A DNA stretch of 63,630 bases, filler included, from Octopus bimaculoides (lineage: Eukaryota), in the NCBI RefSeq assembly GCF_001194135.2. It is 5 parts of 4 records of this genome, joined end to end, with 100 filler letters (N's around TTAATTAATTAA, not from the genome) between each part and the next. Parts side by side here need not be neighbours in the genome. Positions count along the whole stretch, not along the records: positions 1 to 15,490 come from NC_068988.1; 4 more parts are not named here. One strand, 5' to 3'. A program made the translations under genes and the position numbers. The notes beneath the pieces were generated by a model that worked only from the letters and a program-made list of their open reading frames with translations, did no database searches and was not told the DNA's origin. Positions 444-13,635 of the stretch are shown one piece after another; within the stretch, counting starts at the first letter, position 1, and every line of letters begins with the position of its first letter.

Positions 444-3400
444 TCTCTTCTATATATATATATAAANNNNNNNNNNAATCTCTTATCTCTTACACTATTT
501 CAGTATTACGTGTCAAAAGTGAAGCAATAGCATCTCTCTATTGCAATGCGAGATACTTTCAGTTTAATACTTTCACTATTAAACTTAAACTATTACCTCG
601 CATATATACATACATACATATTTCATAAACACTCTACCACTGCTACTAATAATTGTTGGGAACTCTTTCAGACCCGCCTTACATTCGAACCGGAATCTCA
701 AAAACATCGTCCCCTTACATCTCATTCTCATTTCATTACAACGACAGGCAAATAAAACTTACTTCGTACGACGAGACAATGGACGATGGTAACAGACATT
801 AACCAGATGCTACCTTGTCAAGTGAAATATATTGCCATCCGCCTGTTCATAAATTTCACATGCAATCCCAAGTGGAAGGAGAGTCAGGCCGATCTCTTCT
901 TCGGTCAAAAGCCTAAAGACAGGCATGACCTACCCGCCTGAGTTTTCCATCTGAAGTTAATCACTTTCATGGAGCCCATAAAGAAGGGGAACCAAGGGAT
1001 AGTCACATACAATGTGATATGTACTCAATCGAATGGCAAAAAAGGGGCCTTCCACATACTCATATCCTGCTTTGGCTCGCAACGAAGATCAAATCCACTG
1101 ACAGCGACAAGATAATCTCTGCAGAGCTTCCTGATCCAGCTTTAGACAAAGTACTATACGAAATAGTTAAGGCAAACATGGTGCATGGTCCATGTGAGCG
1201 TGGATTCAACATTAACTCACCGTGCTTGAAAGACAGCGTATGTTCAAAAAGGTTTCCAAGGAGGTTCCTACAAGAAACTCAGACAGGTGCCGATGGGTAT
1301 CCATCATACATACGGAGAAAACCAGAAGACGGCGGTTTCACAGCAACTATCGGACAGCACGGGGTTGATACTAGATGGATTGTTCCCTACTGCCCACTCC
1401 TGTCAAACACTTTCAATGCCCACATCAACGTTGAGTTTTGTAAATCCGTTAAGTCCATAAAGTACGTTTGTAAGTATGTGAACAAGGGTTCTGACGCTGC
1501 AATGTTTGGACTTCAACAAGAATACTGCCAGGATGAGGTGACGCACTATCAGGTGGGACTGTACATAAGTAGCCACGAGGCCTTCTGGCGCATCTTTGGC
1601 TTCCCACTTCACCAACGACACCCCGCCATCCAACATCTTGTAGTGCACCTGAAAAAACGGTCAAAGGGTTATGTCACCGATGCTAATGCTTCTCTGTTGG
1701 CAGGGAAACCAAGGGATACCACACTCACTGCATTTTTCAAGCTTTGCCAAGGTGATCCATTCGCTCAAACCTTGCTGTATCCACAGATTCTGTCGTACTA
1801 CACCTGGAATGGAAAAAAATGGGCCCCAATGAAAGCAGGTCAAAATGTTCATGGATACCTTGGCATTAAGTTTGACACTTGCCTTGGGCGAGTATACACA
1901 GTACATCCCACTCAACAATAGTGTTTCTACCTCCGTCTACTACTGCATAAAGTCAGAGGGCCAACGTGTTTTCAGGCCCTAAAAACCGTTCATGGACATG
2001 TCTGCACAACATACAGAGAAGCCTGCTATCGACAAGGACTGTTGGAAGATGGTGCACAATGGGATGCAACTTTATGAGAGGCTGCTTTATCAGAAAAGTC
2101 TCGGGGCACTATTTGCAGTATTATTATAGACATGCGAACTGTGTGATCCGGCCACTCTATGGCTCAAGTACAGGGACAACCTGGCTGAAGACTTTAAGAG
2201 GCAAGTTCAACTGCTTTATCCTGAAGTGGAGGGTATCAGCAATGAAGTCTACAACAAAGCTCTCATTGACATTGAAGACAGAATTGCTACACTGGGTGGA
2301 AATGAATTATCCACATATGGCCTGCCACAAACATTCAGGTCAGGGTCAACTAGCCTTCCCACTGCTGTCATTCGTGAAACATCCTTCGACACTCAAGTGC
2401 TTTCAAAGTACGTTGTTGAAAACGAGCCTAAATTACTTCCGGACCAGCTGCAGGCCTACAGAACTATTCTTAACAATGTACGCCAACGCGAGGGCCAAAT
2501 CTTCATCCTGGATGCTCCTGGAGCGAAAGGAAAAACATTTATTACAAAATTTCTCCTTCTCAGAAGTTAAGCAGCATCAAGACATCGTGGTAGCTGTGAT
2601 TTCCTCTGGTGGCAGGACAGCACACTTGACTTTTAAACTTCCTCTCAATTTAGCAGCATCCGAGATGCCTTCATGCAACATCAACAAAGCTCAGATCAGG
2701 GGAAGGTACTTAAAAGGTGTCAACTAATCGTCTGGGATGAGTGCACCATGGCTCATAAGGGAGTTTTGGTATGCATTAGATAGAGCCCTGAAAAACATCC
2801 GAGACTGTTAGACTCCAATGGGAGGTATAACGCTTCTGTTGTCAGGTGATTTCAGGCAAGCTCTTCCTGTCTTTCTGAAAGGCACTAGAGCAGATGAGGT
2901 CCAAGCATGCCTAAAGTCCTCTACCCTGTGGCATCATGTTACGATCCTCAGTCTAACCACTAACATGAGAACTCAGCTACACGGTGATCAAATGTCCACA
3001 AAGTTTGCACAGGACATTTTGACACTTGGAGATGGCAAGGTGCCTCTTGACGCTGCAGGAGAAATGATAGTGTGGCCATTTTCCTCTGTTGTTAATTCTG
3101 TAGATGAGCTCAAACACAAAGTCTTTCCCAACTCCACAGAAAACTATCAAAATCACAATTGGCTGTGTGAAAGAGCAATATTAACTCAAAAAAAACGTCA
3201 CTGTTAAAAAAGTAAATCAACAGCTAATGCATTCTCTTCTCAGCACTCTTCACACTTACAAGTCTGTTGATACAATTCTAGATAAAAATGAAGTGGTGAA
3301 CTATCCTCCTGAATTTCTGAATTCATTGGAGCCTCCTGGACTACCTCCCCACATATTAGCACTTAAAGTTGGAACTCCTGTAATGCTACTCCGCAATCTG

Positions 3401-4113
3401 GAACCACCAAATCTTTGTAATGGAACACGACTCGTGATAAAGAAAATGATGTCACAGGTTATCGGGGCTATCATTCTTTCTGGATGTGGAAAAGGTGATG
3501 CCGTCTTCATTCCAAGAATTCCTCTTTCACTATCAGGAGCAAAAACTCCATTTACATTCAGAAGACTGCAATTCCCCCTTCGTGTCAGTTTTGCCATGTC
3601 CATTAACAAATCTCAAGGTCAAACCCTCTCTGTAGCTGATCTTCTCTTGGAATAGCCCTGCTTCTCGCACGGACAACTGTATGTTGGCTGCTCAAGAGTG
3701 GGGTGCAAAAGAAACCTCTTTGCATATGCTCCACGAGGAAAAACAAAGAACATTGTTTACAACGAGGTGTTATAATCACAACAGCTAGGAGGTATGTACA
3801 TGATCACCTTTTCTTACCAAACTTCATGTACTTTCATGTATTTACATTGATATACATATATATATGTATGTGTGTGTGTGTGTCAATATATATATATATA
3901 TATACATTGCATGCCAACTAATGTTGGTATATTTATGTCCCCATAAATTAGCAGCTTCCCAAAAGAGACCGATAAAATGAGTGCTTGGGGTCAATTAGTT
4001 CGACTAACGGCAATGCTCCAGTAACGCCACAGTCAATTGCTTTAAACAAGTAAAAGATAAGAACAAACAAATATGCCATTTCACTTCTGAGCAACGCCGG
4101 GTATCTCTACTAG
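444..4113 (+). mobile_element. Helitron (rolling-circle transposon), decayed
   Basis: Rep and PIF1 helicase remnants (next entry). 3' end is gagcaacgccgggtatctcta-CTAG|T (CTAG 4110-4113) after a degenerate GC-rich hairpin. The 5' TC start (a|TCTCTTCTATATA at 444) is tentative and lies next to a gap. Confidence 0.85.
860..3775 (+). pseudogene. Helitron RepHel pseudogene (HUH Rep + PIF1-family SF1 helicase), many frameshifts and stops
   Basis: Rep motifs FTCNPKW, YSIEWQKRGLPHTHILLW, VHGPC, WIVPYCP and KYVCKYVNKG. Helicase motifs GAKGKTF, GRTAHLTFKLP, VWDECTM, SGDFRQALPV, LCNGTRL, QFPLRVSFAMSINKSQGQTL and HGQLYVGCSRV, spread over ORFs 1019-1921, 2226-2570, 2818-3207 and 3227-3655. Confidence 0.93.
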
Positions 4114-5689
4114 TGTATACAAATATATATATATAGAAAGTATTAATCTTGACCCAAACAATTTATGGGAAGATTTCAAAACAAAAGTATTTCAGGCTGC
4201 AAGTTCGTCAGTGGGATTTAAATCTCATAAATCCAGAGATTGGTTCTCAGATAGATCAGCAGAAATTCATGATCTACTTTTAGAAANNNNNNNNNNNNNN
4301 NNNNNNNNNNNNNNNNNNNNNNNNNNNNNNNNNNNNNNNNNNNNGCAACACGGATTTCAAAAGTGATTGCAGTACGCACGTTTCATGCTACTTCAATTTA
4401 TTTAAGTAATGTGAGCATTACCTTAAATGCAATATGAAGAGCAATCTTCAGCTGCACGAAAAAATGTAGAAAAAAAGACATATTACAAATGTGGCAACAT
4501 ATTAAAACCAAGTGGGAGAGAGCAGAGGAAGAATATATAAGTCCATCTTGACATAGCAGGGTCTATCAGGGTCTATATACGCATATGGGTGTGTATATAA
4601 TCACTTTACTTCAGTTACAACCATAGTACTATTTCTGCACACACACACACATACACATACACATAAGCATGAACACACATGCACACTCACACACACGCGC
4701 GGGCACAAAACACACATACACATGATCTTTTTATATGTCTATCCTCCCGCCTCTTTGTAATCTATTTCTTACTCTTTTTTCAGGCTTTCTCTTTATATAT
4801 AATCTCGGTCTTGCCTCTCTCATATTTATTTACATTCATTTTCAATATATTTTCACTGTAGTGTTCGATCCTATTCTTCCTATCACCTCTCTCTCCTCCC
4901 TCTCCCTCTCCCTCCTTCTCTTAACCTCCTACTTTCTCCTTTTGTATTTTTCCCCTTCTCTTTCCCTCCTATATTCGCTTAATTTATACCTCCCTTTCAA
5001 AGCGTAAGTATATACAAATACTTAGAGGCGCAAAAATCAATCTGCGTTCGTAGAAACAAGGAAAAAAATCTATATATTTAATAGTTTGTTTTTCTATAAA
5101 CCTCTCGAACAGAAATAAATCAGAGATTTGTTATGATTATTCAGCTACTGAAACTACTTCCAACGGCCATTTCTTTTTTTCTTTCCTTCCAGTTCTAAAG
5201 GAAAACGAGAGAAGACCCTCCTCACCTTACTTCTTCATTAATATCAAGCAAGGCTAAGTAATACTCGTTAAGATATTCTCTAGATATTGATGGAGGGATG
5301 CAGCTGACTCGGTAGGCAGAATATAAAACTGCTTACGGAATGGTCCACCTTTTGTGCACTAACACTAATATATTGATGTTTCAAGCCAATTCATCTAACT
5401 CTTAAACAGTTCAATACGCCTGCTTACCTTCTCTCTCATCTTTATTCTATTTTCCCCTCTCAGGGTCCATCAGAATTGTTTCCAGATCGACTACAATTCT
5501 ATTGCTACTGTTATGTCGCGAGCCAGTGATCTCTCATTCCGCAAGAACTTCGATGAAAGTAATGTTGTTACATTTGACAACAAAGTTACGCTTACCGAGA
5601 GTGACTTCCAACTGTTTCCTCAAACCATATATTCCCCTCTCCCCTCTCCCCAACTTTTTACAAACACTGATTTGTGTAGAGTTTTCGTT

Positions 5690-6500: not shown

Positions 6501-6694
6501 CAGTATGGGAGAGCTTGTGAAGGCCATAGTCTCCGGTATTTCTGACGACTAAATACTTAAATAAAATATGAATAAATATAATTCAAAGCTGTAAGCAAGG
6601 TCAGTACTAGAAGATTAACGAGTACTTCTTTTTAAAAGGAAATACCAAGTTCAACTTCTTCTGGAAAATATAGGGTGCGAGTGTGAATCTGTGT

Positions 6695-6741
<47 letters not shown>

Positions 6742-7456
6742 CCTGTATATATGTGTGAGTGTGTGAATGTGCATGTGTGCGTGTATTCCACGTAGACATA
6801 AACATACATATATCATACAATACACACACATAACTAAGATCATATTCGACCAGCATACATACATCTTGCGATTCGGAGATAGAAACAACAACGACCTATA
6901 ACACTTCGTCTTGAAGCTGAAGGACAGAGGAGTTCGAAATTTGCCTTAAGTCTGGAACATACTACCTACTACACATCAGTATATCAATGGGGCAAAAATA
7001 TATACGTTATGCCCATTCAAAACGTTTTACACCCAAAAGAACTATGGTTAATGAACGCTTGAATTTTTGAGCCAATTCAAATAAAAGGCAAACATTTTAT
7101 CAAAAATTTCAAACATAATTAAGCTGGTATCTGATAGACTCGAGAAAAGCTGACCTATCCTTCACCATCAATTTTTTTTCTTTTCTGTTTTTTTGTCAGA
7201 AATAAGCAGAAATAAGCAGTGATCTCCAACAAGGTTAAAAGAAGGTCTGATCTCATCACCTACTCTCAACTAACCAATGAGAACTAGGAACCAGCAGCAA
7301 TCCTACGTACCAACTTCATTTTTCGGTATTCATTTCCAGAGAACTTGTGTGATTGTACACGCGTTTCACTATTTATAACTTACATTACGGTGATTTTCTA
7401 AATCATATTAATTATATGTGTGTGAGCGTATGTGTGTCTATATGTGCCTGCATATG

Positions 7457-7517: not shown

Positions 7518-8330
7518 TGGGTCATCTCATAAATAATGCGGGGTTTTTTTTCAGTTGCATGAACTAAAAGTTGGAGGGGGACGGGATAAGCAGGCAGTAA
7601 TTTTACCTTGTACTTATACTTAGTGCAAATTTTGAAGAGTGCAGTTCGATTTTAGTTATTTTTGCAAAGATATAATGGAAGTGACAAAGGAGCATATTCG
7701 ACATATTTTGCTTTATGAGTTCAATAAAGGCAACAACGGAAAGGAAAGTGCGAGGAATATTAACGCAGTATATGGGGATAGGGTAATAAGCGTAAGCCAG
7801 TGTCAACAGTGGTTCCAGAAATTCCGTGCCGGAAACTATAGCCTAGAAGATGAGCCTCGTCCGGGAAGATCTGTAGAGCTCGACGAGGACATCCTGCAAA
7901 CCCTGGTGGAACAAAATCCCCTCGTAACTGTTGTGGAACTAGCAGTGGAACTTGAATTTGGTCATTCAACCATTCATCGACACCTGCATGCCATCGGAAA
8001 AGTTAGCAAATTGGATCAATGGGTTCCTCACAAACTTACCAAGTCTAATCTCACGCAGAGAGTGAATGTGTGCTCTTCTTTGCGTGTGTCATGTCTCACG
8101 AATAAACCTTTTTTGGACCGAAAAGTGACTGGTGACGAGAAATGAGTTCTCTATAAAAATGTCAAGAGCTAATGACATTGGATAGGCAAAGGAGAAACAC
8201 CGGCACTCCTGGCTAAAGAAGGTCTTCACCCATGTAAGGTGTTGTTATCTGTTTGATGAGATATGAAAGGTTTAGTCGACTTTGAACTTTTAAACACAAG
8301 CCAAACGATAACAAATAAGATCTACTGTCA
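7517..8330 (+). mobile_element. Mariner transposon, 5' half (3'-truncated)
   Basis: TA followed by TIR-like TTGGGTCATCTCATAAATAATGCGG. ORF from ATG 7675 encodes HTH domains, WVPHKL and FLDRKVTGDEK (first catalytic D), then stops. No right TIR seen. Confidence 0.9.
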
Positions 8331-8495
8331 AATAATAAGCAGAAAACAAATGTATTCAAAGCCTTATAAAACATATATACTTTTCATCAAAATAACGAAG
8401 TAATTACATAACAGTACAGTTCTATATTTAAGAGATGAGGAATTATGTACATTATTTACATTTGACGGATATTTGTCCTCATATTGTTTGTTGTT

Positions 8496-8541
8496 AACAC
8501 AGAGTTTCAGCTGATATACCCTCCAGCCTTCATCAGGTGTT
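8496..8541 (-). ncRNA. Minimal type I hammerhead ribozyme, mutated copy
   Basis: AACAC-CTGATGA-A-GGCTG..CAGCT-GAA-ACTC-T-GTGTT on the minus strand; stem III palindrome broken. Confidence 0.55.
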
Positions 8542-8576
8542 TTGGGGAAATTTCGAACCTGGGTTCTCATTTTCGA

Positions 8577-8642
<66 letters not shown>

Positions 8643-8720
8643 CCAGGTCACTGCTTGGAATCGAACTCGGAATCTTGGGATTAGTAGCCCGCACTCTTAA
8701 CCACTACGCCATATGCCCAA

Positions 8721-8766
8721 GGCACCTGATGAAGGCTGGAGGGTATATCAGCCAAAACGTTGTGTC
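8721..8766 (+). ncRNA. Minimal type I hammerhead ribozyme, single G12->A lesion
   Basis: GGCAC-CTGATGA-A-GGCTG-GAGGGTATAT-CAGCC-AAA-ACGT-T-GTGTC. Stems I and II and palindromic stem III (ACGT) are intact; GAA is AAA at 8754. Confidence 0.7.
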
Positions 8767-10309
8767 AACAACAAACAAGATGAGGACAAATATCCGTCAA
8801 ATGTAAATAATATAAATAATGTACATAACAGTAGTAAAAACATGCAACCCTGCATTTCGCCTCATCAGTGTCCTGTAATAAATACATCAACCGATGTTGA
8901 AGCTCCTATTATATACACTTTTCCCTGTTAGGCAAATGATCGTGCTAGACTTACTACTGGAATGGAGTGTGGAACCCTCAACTAAGCCCGATTTTGGTTG
9001 TCTGTTTCACTTTACTGAACCCCTTTTATATATATATACACACATACATACATGTGTGTATTTGTGTCTGTTTGTTTGTGTCTCTGTGTGTTTGTGTTTG
9101 TCTGTGCTGCGTACGAGCGTATGTGTGTGCATATATGTACAGTTAAAAGTGATTTAGAAAGTTTCAGCTTTGCAAGTTGTAAATAAAGGAGTTAAAAATG
9201 AAGCTAAAGAAACTCTGGGGTATATACTTTTACTTTATGTTTCAATATTTTGGCTTTAAAACCATTTATCAAGGAAAAATGGAGATTGAGCTGTACAGAA
9301 ATGCAGAAAAATGAGCTGAGTGCGACACGTGCATATTAACGTTATTTATGTAGCCAATTACCGGAATGTAATTATAATTGATGTTTTATTTTTTGTGAAT
9401 AAGAATGACCTGTCTCCTTTTCGAGTTTCAAATTTCTAAGCCTTTGACAGTGACAGCAATACCCTTGTTGTGACATCTTTTCGGATAGTTTCCAGCCGAA
9501 AAGTTATTCGTGTTAATGGACTCTTCTACACATATGTAAACTTTTCAAATGATGTTACCGATATAAAACCCACCTTATTCATTAAATGTACTACATCAAA
9601 GACTGAAAAAATTACTTTCTAAAGCTACCAGTCTTTGATTACAAAATTAATGCTTCAATTCACCTAGGTATTGCATATGGGGAAACTGAATACACAAACG
9701 GCGCATTCGGCCCTTCTTTGAGAAACTAGATCTTTAGACATTATCGCTGATACGGCAAAATGTATGCACACACACTAACCAACTTGACCGTCAAAAATGT
9801 TGACGTGTTTCTATAGGCTTATATGACATACCGCATGGCATGTAAAAAAACAAAGAATTTTACATCGATTAAACCATTCACAAACTCAATCGCGGTAAAG
9901 AACTCTTTCCAATGAATGCCCATCTCAATCCAGCGCGGTAAGTTCTACTCAAGGTAATGTTTGCACCATGTAAAATGTATTATTGATATCTTCAAATCTA
10001 ATACAGCATGTGTATACAGGGTGCGTCAAAAATCCACCCAGATTTACCATTCTTGACGAAAGTTTCAACAATGAACGCACGATGTGAACCCGTTTAAACT
10101 ATGATGATAACAAATAAGAAATATAACAGTACTAGCCACATGAAAGCACCATTACCACCCGTCTCCTTTACTTTTGCCATACATATAAACGTATAAAATA
10201 TGAGCTGTTTTTCTCTCGTACTGTATGTGTATAAGTGTATGCGTGTGCATTTATATATGTATGCCTTTATATGTCGTTGTCTATGTATTTGTCCGTGTGT
10301 GGGGTGGGG

Positions 10310-10475: not shown

Positions 10476-11280
10476 GAAACTAGTAAAGCATGTATGCATG
10501 CATGTATGTATGTATCTATGTATTATGTATTATGTTTGCATGTATGAATGTGTTTGGATATGTGTACGTGTATTAATATCATTCGCAAGAAATTTATTGG
10601 CAGTGATTCACTATTACATTGCTCCTGAGATAACTTGTGCCATTTCTCTAAGCACTTTCCTTTAACTGACTTTCGACAACAATAGGGTAAAAAAGAAAGA
10701 TTGTTTTCCTCTGTGCCAGCATATGAAACTGTTGTAAGCCTTTACAATCAAATAACTGAATTAGTAGCAAACGCACACACACAGAAAAATGTATGTATAT
10801 GCATCATATATATACATATACAAATATGTAAATACATATGTATACAGATGTAAATACATATGTATACAGATGTAAATACATATGTATACATATATATATA
10901 TATATAAATACATACACACACTCATACATATATGGGTGTGAGTGTGACTGTATATAGGTACATAGAAATCTTTGTGAGAAAACGAATCGATAAGATTTCA
11001 TCATATCCTTTATTGAAACCAAACCCAATATATCGATTCATAATTTCAACTTTCATGTATTCTAAATTTTTCTCATGGTTCTTCCTAACTGTGTAGTACT
11101 TGGTCCCTTCGGGGTTTACTGCAACATAATTGGTTTTCGTTTGCTATACGAACTAAACCTGTCATGTGCTTATTAGCGCAACTTTGTCTGCACATACATA
11201 CACAAACATGCTTTCACTCTCTCTCCTTGTCTCTCTGTCTGTTTTCATATATTTATATATATATATATATNNNNNNNNNN

Positions 11281-11317
<37 letters not shown>

Positions 11318-11909
11318 ATGCGTATATGTATCCATATATGTGTGTGTATACATATATACATACATAATACATATATGTGTGTGTCTATGGGTGTACTTGT
11401 ATGCGTGTATGCTTGCGTGTATATGTGTATACGTGTGCACGCGCCCGCGTATGTGTGTGCCAAGCTCCCGTCTTGTAAAGCAGTATGCTACTTGGAGCGG
11501 TGTCTTAGAATTTATCAGTAAATCTAGAGTAAATCTAGAGCTGAAGGCTATATCCTTGAACCTATTCATGCAGTAAACTCAAATAGAACAGGACGCAAAT
11601 TCCAGTGTTACAGCCTAAGCCATATACTGCTTTCAGTGAAATATAATTCCTTTTGGTAAACATCTCTTAGAATTCTATTCACATCAAGTATGAATTATTG
11701 CAGCCGTTCCCAAATACGATATATTTTTGATAAGGTCACAAAAACAAATTATTTTCAAGTTTTGAAATACTTGTAATTATAAAATCTTTATATCTATGTT
11801 ATAGGCATAAGGGCCACCAGACAAAAATTGCTGCAATATAAGGCATATTTCCTCAAGAAAACTGACATGTTAAGTGTACTTCTTCGTTGTAATATATTAA
11901 AAAAGAAAG

Positions 11910-13456: not shown

Positions 13457-13502
<46 letters not shown>

Positions 13503-13598
13503 GCATACATACATACATACATACATACATACATACATACGTACATACATACATACATACATACATGCGTGTGTGGATGTATGTATGTGGGTATCTTT

Positions 13599-13635
<37 letters not shown>

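Follow-up and report, generated by a model that had tools for sequence, protein, structure and literature searches.

A locus at positions 8406-8833 of the DNA analysed here raises the question of which reverse transcriptase (RT) copies a short interspersed element (SINE) whose 3' module carries a hammerhead ribozyme of the type found in Penelope-like elements (PLEs). SINEs are defined as parasites of long interspersed elements (LINEs). The window, by which we mean the whole stretch of 63,630 nucleotides that was analysed, comes from Octopus bimaculoides (NCBI RefSeq assembly GCF_001194135.2). The reading we favour is that 8406-8833 represents one old retroposition of an octopus SINE with a PLE-type 3' module, copied by PLE enzymes; dependence on PLEs is likely rather than demonstrated. 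The reading builds on the anatomy of the unit, the membership of its copies in one family, the class of its ribozyme and the architecture of its insertions, each of which is observed directly.

The retroposon locus consists of a full-length unit of ~300 nt on the minus strand (copy A) and an inverted, 5'-truncated copy of its tail (copy B). Read along the minus strand, copy A comprises a 76-nt tRNA-like head (8643-8718; direct reading and motif scan), an internal (TAA)n microsatellite spacer (8579-8642; 21.3 units, 100% pure according to TRF), a 37-nt linker from spacer to ribozyme (8542-8578; alignment), a decayed minimal type I hammerhead (8496-8541; reading, alignment and fold) and a 3' tail downstream of the ribozyme (8415-8495) that ends in ...TTCCTCATCTCTTAAATATAGAACTGTA, the same 3' terminus as in an aligned copy from Octopus sinensis (copy C, described below). 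The tail after the ribozyme is 81 nt long, or ~110 nt when counted from the cleavage site, and linker and tail together span ~164 nt (8578→8415). The (AAT)n spacer and the ~170-nt tail described in an initial annotation of this DNA are both confirmed. The linker of copy A is without 12 nt that alignment finds in copies C and D. At the 3' end of the unit there is neither poly(A) nor a LINE-like terminal microsatellite, as read in copies A and C.

Copy B lies on the plus strand (8719-8828), contains tail sequence only, and is truncated at both ends, as seen from the inverted repeat, blastn and alignment. It meets the 5' end of the head, with which it overlaps by 3 nt (GGG/CCC; 8716-8718), begins 5 nt ahead of its own, likewise decayed, minimal type I hammerhead (8721-8766; reading and alignment), and stops at a microhomology with the target (ACATAA), ~27 nt before the family 3' end. 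A repeat finder reports the pair as an inverted repeat with 110-nt arms of 89% identity (8442-8551 and 8711-8820), the two hammerheads being its arms, and blastn aligns copy B to copy A at 90.5% over 105 nt. A target-site duplication (TSD) of 9-11 bp, ACATAACAG, recognised by direct reading, encloses the whole composite. Its left copy is the 11-mer ACATAACAG(TA) at 8406-8416, whose TA is ambiguous, since these two bases may instead close the element, and its right copy at 8823-8833 is the same 11-mer.

Relatives of the unit were traced by a protein search with concatenated six-frame peptides of the tail, which gave one match, O. sinensis LOC115224785, whose N-terminus (MRTQVRNFPKTPEEGWRVYQPKRCVNNKHDEDNYPS) is the translated linker, ribozyme and tail of the SINE. 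Through cluster members of LOC115224785 we retrieved 47 kb of O. sinensis DNA (CM016884.1; L001) and an orthologous 35.7 kb contig of Octopus vulgaris (L002), in which family pieces were found by local blastn and direct reading. Copy C (L001 9836-10156, with an orthologue in L002) is full length; its head is followed by an AAC/AAT spacer of ~75 nt and then by the linker, the ribozyme and the tail. Directly 5' of its head lies an inverted piece E, made up of the head from position 27 onward and the beginning of the spacer. Copy D (L001 ~6200→5960) is headless: it opens with a long microsatellite of AAT/GAT, to which the linker, a ribozyme with an internal deletion and the tail are joined. The spacer site is thus variable, being occupied by AAC/AAT/GAT microsatellites in C and D.

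The heads of copies A and C are 95.9% identical, and their tails 89.2% identical over 157 nt (blastn). The flanks of the two copies differ, and they are therefore independent insertions. The claim that head and tail are co-linked is accordingly borne out, with the same order of head, spacer, linker and tail at two independent loci (copy A, and copy C in L001/L002). In all, ~63 kb of octopus DNA contains three independent loci, namely A with B in the window, and C with E and D separately in L001. Copies B and D are 5'-truncated, and the evidence supports a short, non-coding, dispersed retroposon in whose family 5' truncation is common. Copies A and C have ~27-35 nt at the 3' end that are absent from B and D, a difference which in so small a sample would look the same after simple 3' truncation. 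Collections of metagenomes and of viral and prokaryotic genomes, scanned for exact 22-mers, returned 0 matches, and no record of the window's open reading frames (ORFs) was present in the assemblies index.

Copy C also has a place in the gene model through which it was found. All three predicted isoforms of LOC115224785 start within copy C (L001 10001-10108), at an ATG in the linker (ATGAGAACCCAGG); the reading frame crosses the hammerhead and leaves the tail at a GTAAGT splice donor that has arisen there (ATTG|GTAAGT). Copy C thereby gives the model its annotated first exon, start codon and splice donor. The native start of the gene (MKAPASIVF…, signal-peptide-like) is probably downstream, and the O. 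vulgaris model has another first exon, so the start in copy C is either SINE exonisation or an annotation artefact.

Two CTGATGAAGGCTG cores occur in the examined piece of the window, at 8536→8524 on the minus strand and at 8726-8738 on the plus strand. Six hammerhead motifs at three loci had been reported; two of them are confirmed here, the examined piece having one locus and the other loci lying outside it. In copy A (8541→8496) the DNA reads AACAC CTGATGA A GGCTGG AGGGTATA TCAGCT GAA ACTC T GTGTT, corresponding to the RNA AACAC CUGAUGA A GGCUGG AGGGUAUA UCAGCU GAA ACUC U GUGUU. Its lesions are a G·U pair at 10.1-11.1 and the loss of the helix III palindrome (ACUC), the core itself being intact. 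Copy B (8721-8766) reads GGCAC CTGATGA A GGCTGG AGGGTATA TCAGCC AAA ACGT T GTGTC as DNA and GGCAC CUGAUGA A GGCUGG AGGGUAUA UCAGCC AAA ACGU U GUGUC as RNA, and its lesion is a change of the essential G12 to A, at a CpG. The RNA of copy C (L001 10030-10075, also in L002) is GACAC CUGAAGA A GGCUGG AGGGUGUA UCAGCC GAA ACGU U GUGUU; hammerhead position 7, at which it differs from CUGAUGA, is free.

We scanned for minimal hammerheads with a strict descriptor (CUGANGA, an optional bulge, helix II of at least 4 bp, GAA, palindromic helix III, H17≠G and helix I of at least 3 bp). Copy C passes the descriptor, whereas the window copies A and B fail, copy A on account of its non-palindromic helix III. 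The chance expectation of the descriptor, from 300 dinucleotide shuffles, is 0.003 per 62.8 kb on both strands, which rules out a chance motif. The catalytic core (C3U4G5A6N7G8A9, G12A13A14, A15.1/U16.1 and H17≠G) is found in copy C and in the consensus, and not in copy B. A bulged A between A9 and G10.1 is present in A, B and C; G10.1-C11.1 is present in B and C, and D keeps C11.1; the loop-less palindrome ACGU, with no helix III hairpin, is present in B, C and D. At its outer end helix I closes with A-U in A, with G-C in B and with G·U in C. The minimum-free-energy fold of the monomer contains helices I and II; the dimeric hammerhead fold was not recovered by RNAcofold, a result that is uninformative for an intermolecular helix of 4 bp.

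Alignment of the copies points back to an intact ancestor. Copies C and D both read CAGCCGAAACGT, copy B backs CAGCC and ACGT, and copy A backs G12; the majority consensus of the four copies (A, B, C and D) is an intact minimal hammerhead, and the ancestral sequence is therefore taken to have been one as well. The 160-nt tail consensus reads …CCCAAGRCAC CTGATGA A GGCTGG AGGGTRTA TCAGCC GAA ACGT T GTGTY AACAACAAACAAGATGAGGACAAATATCCGTCAAATGTAAATAATGTACATAATTCCTCATCTCTTAAATRTAGAACTGTA. Neither window motif equals the hammerhead consensus quoted in the initial annotation, which nevertheless gains backing from copies C and D of O. sinensis and O. vulgaris. The inactivating changes of A and B fall at the two CpGs of CCGAAACGU, a pattern that fits neutral decay of dispersed copies. 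Judged from its sequence, the intact form of the SINE ribozyme would be expected to cleave itself.

The features of this ribozyme are those of PLEs. For comparison, a PLE-like query retrieved 5629 proteins with RT and GIY-YIG domains (domains checked), of which the top 120 were listed, and two PLE loci served as positive controls, one in an ENA contig (ERZ25068511; L003) and one in Lytechinus pictus (L004). The strict descriptor finds exactly one motif 3' of each control PLE ORF: GCC CUGAAGA A GACCG..CGGUC GAA ACGU C GGC in L003 and UCUC CUGAGGA C GACAAG..CUUGUC GAA ACGU C GAGA in L004. Copy C and both controls share a bulged nucleotide, the G10.1-C11.1 pair, a loop-less ACGU and the string GAA-ACGU. 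The L003 ribozyme ends 46 nt before the 3' end of its element, and the SINE ribozyme likewise lies in the 3' terminal module. The bulged nucleotide, G10.1-C11.1 and the loop-less helix III are the marks listed for PLE minimal hammerheads by Cervera & de la Peña 2014 (PMC4209133), who also describe dual motifs on opposite strands, 100-700 bp apart, and weak cleavage that takes place in dimers only (PMC4209133). On the basis of copy C and the consensus, assignment of the SINE ribozyme to the PLE-type minimal type I hammerheads is solid as far as sequence can establish it. The L003 region is itself a clear instance of the published PLE insertion structure: 895-5035 contains two head-to-head PLE copies, 99.1% identical, with a minimal hammerhead ~50 nt past each stop codon; its TSD, TTAGAAACAT, stands directly at one end and follows a 31-nt extension at the other.

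At the other end of the unit, the head carries the boxes of a Pol III (RNA polymerase III) promoter. We compared it with the promoter consensus (box A TRGCNNAGTGG and box B GGTTCGANNCC, at tRNA-like spacing). Box A (TGGCGTAGTGG, 8711→8701) and box B (GAGTTCGATTCC, 8668→8657) lie on the minus strand with 33 nt between them and fit the consensus at 11/11 and 10/11 positions, respectively. Such a pair occurs once in the window and once in L001, where it belongs to the head of copy C, and in none of 500 shuffles. TTTT is absent inside copy A, the first T4 run being 25 nt downstream, and with the promoter boxes this leads us to infer that the copy A unit could be transcribed by Pol III. A second B-box-like motif, GGTTCGAAATT, is located in the linker (8548-8558 on the minus strand, equivalent to L001 10012-10022 on the plus strand) and is kept in A, C and D. 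A TFIIIC site, the vestige of a tRNA 3' half and a portion of the PLE-derived module are all conceivable readings of this motif.

The layout of the insertions suggests that Penelope rather than LINE enzymes are the copiers. PLE insertions often carry an inverted 5'-truncated copy beside the 5' end, together with an extension of 30-40 bp at one end only (Craig et al. 2021, PMC8557442), and the L003 control displays both published features in its head-to-head pair and 31-nt extension. Among the SINEs, an inverted partial copy lies against the 5' end of the head in both full-length copies (2/2), as copy B in the window and as piece E in L001. The inverted segment differs by locus, being tail in the window and head in L001, and piece E ends in the spacer and not at the family 3' end, which is a caveat on a PLE-type layout. 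Copy D lacks an inverted partner. As the direct copies are full length, the inverted pieces duplicate sequence that the direct copy also contains. On these grounds LINE-type twin priming on a single RNA was rejected; an inverted piece of this kind would need a second template or a template switch, unlike LINE twin priming. A retrozyme was also considered and rejected for lack of tandem units, as neither TRF nor the repeat finder detected tandem units of retrozyme type (170-400 nt with one type I hammerhead each).

Under the PLE reading, retroposition might proceed as follows. Pol III would start at the head and read through the unit. The ribozyme and tail would mimic a PLE 3' end, and the RT/GIY-YIG endonuclease of a PLE would for that reason copy the RNA into a staggered nick. 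A second, partial cDNA would then be laid inverted against the 5' end, primed internally at a microhomology, as is typical of PLE integration. The outcome on the plus strand would be TSD, full unit, inverted partial tail and TSD. With no helix III hairpin, cleavage (after GUU) would occur only when ACGU pairs with a second copy. All copies here keep both sides of the cleavage site, and the template would therefore have been uncleaved RNA; the ribozyme is probably kept as part of a PLE 3' recognition or processing module. The full form of this proposal, a true 'PLE-SINE' that is driven by Pol III from a tRNA-like head and parasitises the RT and endonuclease of a PLE through its ribozyme-bearing 3' module, is put forward more tentatively, and we give it less than even confidence.

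Several observations weigh against a PLE-copied, Pol III-driven SINE. The Rfam hammerhead models give no match in the window at E≤1, nor at E≤10 on 8380-8860 and L001 9760-10170. ARAGORN reports no tRNA in the window, L001 or L002, the Rfam tRNA model has no match in the window at E≤1, nor at E≤10 on 8380-8860 (481 nt) and L001 9760-10170, and the acceptor and T stems of the head are on inspection unable to pair. ARAGORN and Rfam being blind to it, the head is tRNA-like only as a pair of promoter boxes; of the tRNA-like Pol III head originally described, boxes A and B are confirmed, and tRNA detectors see nothing. No octopus-named PLE is among the top 120 listed of the 5629 PLE proteins, so that a tail shared by SINE and PLE is putative, and a protein search found no homologue of a GIY-YIG fragment at the edge of L001. 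The window, L001 and L002 show neither a direct tandem of the SINE unit nor a pLTR-like (pseudo-long-terminal-repeat) layout. In the window the target of the insertion was not a microsatellite, the TSD of the L001 insertion is tentative and weak (TTATAA, 6 bp, AT-rich), and only three independent loci are available in the sample. Finally, the recent expansion of SINEs in O. vulgaris falls together with one of LINEs (JC 0.065), and the main PLE wave is older (PMC13282606). In the same genome, 893 SINE families are reported to be unclassified and 30 Penelope families to have been active recently (PMC13282606).

When the window, L001 and L002 were searched for an autonomous partner by tblastn with the 120 PLE proteins, no RT or GIY-YIG domain came to light beside any SINE copy. 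The sole match in these sequences, to 42 of the 120 proteins, was to the edge of L001 (46300-47346, minus strand), where a truncated ORF with a zinc-finger-like CxxC motif and a GIY-YIG domain (Pfam E = 5.9e-5) runs off the end of the sequence. Behind the ORF come five tandem units, which are ~70 bp long and all carry ATTGG and TGACGTC motifs. The element is without a hammerhead and without similarity to the SINE tail, and it is probably another octopus PLE-like family.

The alternative that survives best, which we nevertheless regard as unlikely, is that of an ordinary LINE-mobilised SINE of tRNA type that once took up part of a PLE terminal repeat as body sequence, the ribozyme being a passenger and the machinery that of a CR1, RTE or R4-type LINE. 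The missing PLE partner and the timing of the expansions in O. vulgaris noted above speak for it, and SINE bodies of mosaic composition are known (PMC4758252). Against it, the PLE-type module lies at the 3' end, the site at which the partner is recognised; the unit also lacks poly(A) or a terminal simple repeat, its tail has no blastn match to the three LINE fragments in L001, and the inverted, duplicated 5' partial copy in both full-length copies is unexplained by twin priming on a single RNA. The proposal that this is a Pol III SINE built on a PLE terminal repeat rather than a LINE tail draws support from the co-linearity of the unit, the PLE-type ribozyme, the match to the controls and the inverted copies, and is weakened by the missing octopus PLE and the failure of tRNA detectors.

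Less probable still is that two unrelated neighbours have been read as one element, these being a SINE that ends in (AAT)n and a PLE-derived solo terminal repeat, resembling a retrozyme monomer, inserted in the microsatellite. PLEs are biased toward insertion into microsatellites (PMC8557442), copy D has microsatellite, linker and tail without a head, and piece E is made of the head and the beginning of the spacer only, all of which speak for such a pair. Against this, the same order and the same linker junction recur at two loci whose differing flanks mark them as independent, the whole composite in the window is bracketed by the TSD and the inverted copy, and 5' truncation easily accounts for copy D. 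The two-element scenario may well describe the origin of the family rather than the nature of the present copies.

The weakest alternative, a foldback or miniature inverted-repeat transposable element (MITE; e.g. a Mutator-like DNA transposon, with a 9-11 bp TSD) whose terminal inverted repeats would be the hammerhead arms, accounts for the 110-nt arms, 89% complementary, at the locus ends, the 9-11 bp direct repeat that flanks them and the very stable RNA/DNA hairpin (z = -15.9), but is excluded by the difference between loci in the inverted segment, head and not tail being inverted at the second locus, and is further opposed by the missing inverted partner of copy D, the asymmetric arms (A extending ~27 nt past B) and the constancy of the head-spacer-tail unit, leaving it a very slight probability.

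If transcribed, the inverted pair at 8418-8823 would form a near-perfect hairpin of ~105 bp (-178 kcal/mol, z = -15.9), and such an RNA would be a plausible substrate for ADAR or small-RNA pathways on the strength of the predicted fold. An Rfam match to MIR7533 (58 bits vs a gathering score of 230) was rejected, as it reflects this hairpin only. Other remnants of mobile elements are present in the window. A Helitron remnant on the plus strand (1019-3655) has ORFs for Helitron_like_N / Rep, PIF1 helicase and Pif1 2B domains, broken over several frames. A 168-aa ORF on the plus strand (7639-8145), ~260 nt upstream of the SINE locus, matches the Mos1-type mariner transposase domain HTH_48 (E = 1.9e-22) and appears to be an N-terminal fragment of a Tc1/mariner transposase. 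On the minus strand at ~12350-12270 there is a different tRNA-like SINE head, with A-box-like GTGCAGTGGTTAA and B-box-like GGTTTGAGTTCAAATCCCACC, whose body is unrelated to the hammerhead family. Microsatellites of TG, TA, ATAC and GA occupy 3826-3917, 6667-6890, 10490-10963, 11190-11474 and 13461-13634, and sub-threshold Rfam microRNA matches (mir-297, mir-3149 and mir-466) were discarded as composition artefacts of these dense microsatellites.

Among known systems, the octopus ribozyme most resembles the PLE minimal hammerheads, with which it shares the CUGANGA...GAA core, an unpaired nucleotide between A9 and G10.1, the G10.1-C11.1 pair, a helix II of 5-6 bp, a helix I of 3-5 bp, a loop-less ACGU helix III, a position tens of nucleotides from the 3' end, and motifs on opposite strands 100-700 bp apart. 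Unlike those hammerheads, it has no RT/GIY-YIG ORF beside it and is preceded, within a ~300-nt unit, by a Pol III-type tRNA-like head and a microsatellite. The Smα/Sjα SINE-like retroposons of Schistosoma are similarly short and non-coding, with a Pol III promoter and a hammerhead (PMC6765202). The Smα ribozyme belongs to the canonical type I hammerheads, has a hairpin at helix III and makes loop-loop contacts; it is found mostly in tandem arrays, and its cleavage frees monomers from multimeric transcripts (reviewed in PMC6765202), whereas the octopus unit has a PLE-type minimal ribozyme, dispersed single copies and inverted partial copies. Metazoan non-LTR (long terminal repeat) retrozymes are likewise non-coding, with a type I hammerhead and a presumed dependence on PLE enzymes, and have recently been argued to be non-autonomous PLE derivatives (PMC7229834; bioRxiv 10.64898/2026.07.22.740005). 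They are arranged in tandem with one ribozyme per unit, give circular RNAs of 170-400 nt and have no Pol III head, in contrast to the octopus unit, which has a head and no tandems. Non-autonomous PLEs of Chlamys share their 3' ends with autonomous families (PMC8557442).

In its A/B-box head, small size, dispersal with TSDs and frequent 5' truncation, the unit also resembles tRNA-derived SINEs, including OR1, OR2 and OK of octopus, as these are described in two reviews (PMC4758252, PMC4824008). The two reviews, citing Ohshima & Okada 1994, disagree on whether the CORE-SINE is OR1 or OR2. Unlike classical LINE-tailed SINEs, the octopus unit has a tail that is not LINE-like and bears a PLE-type ribozyme. 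It was compared with OR1, OR2 and OK through their descriptions, and identity with the OK family is conceivable. A tRNA-like-headed SINE with a PLE-type tail is undescribed in cephalopods in the literature searched, with Repbase, Dfam and the 1994 octopus SINEs outside this comparison. The ribozyme class and the SINE structure of the unit are solid, and the SINE-PLE partnership as a class is likewise absent from that literature.

If a SINE does borrow the 3' end of a PLE, the SINE concept would extend to a second class of reverse transcriptase. There would also be a simple explanation for the orphan minimal hammerheads that number in the thousands in invertebrate genomes, many of which could be SINE tails. 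A short, Pol III-expressed substrate of this kind would be useful for the study of PLE integration, from its inverted and tandem copies and its one-sided extension to the part played by the ribozyme. For the biology of octopus genomes, of which SINEs are a major fraction, it would mean that part of the ~900 'unclassified SINE' families (~11.6% of the octopus genome) may be PLE-dependent.

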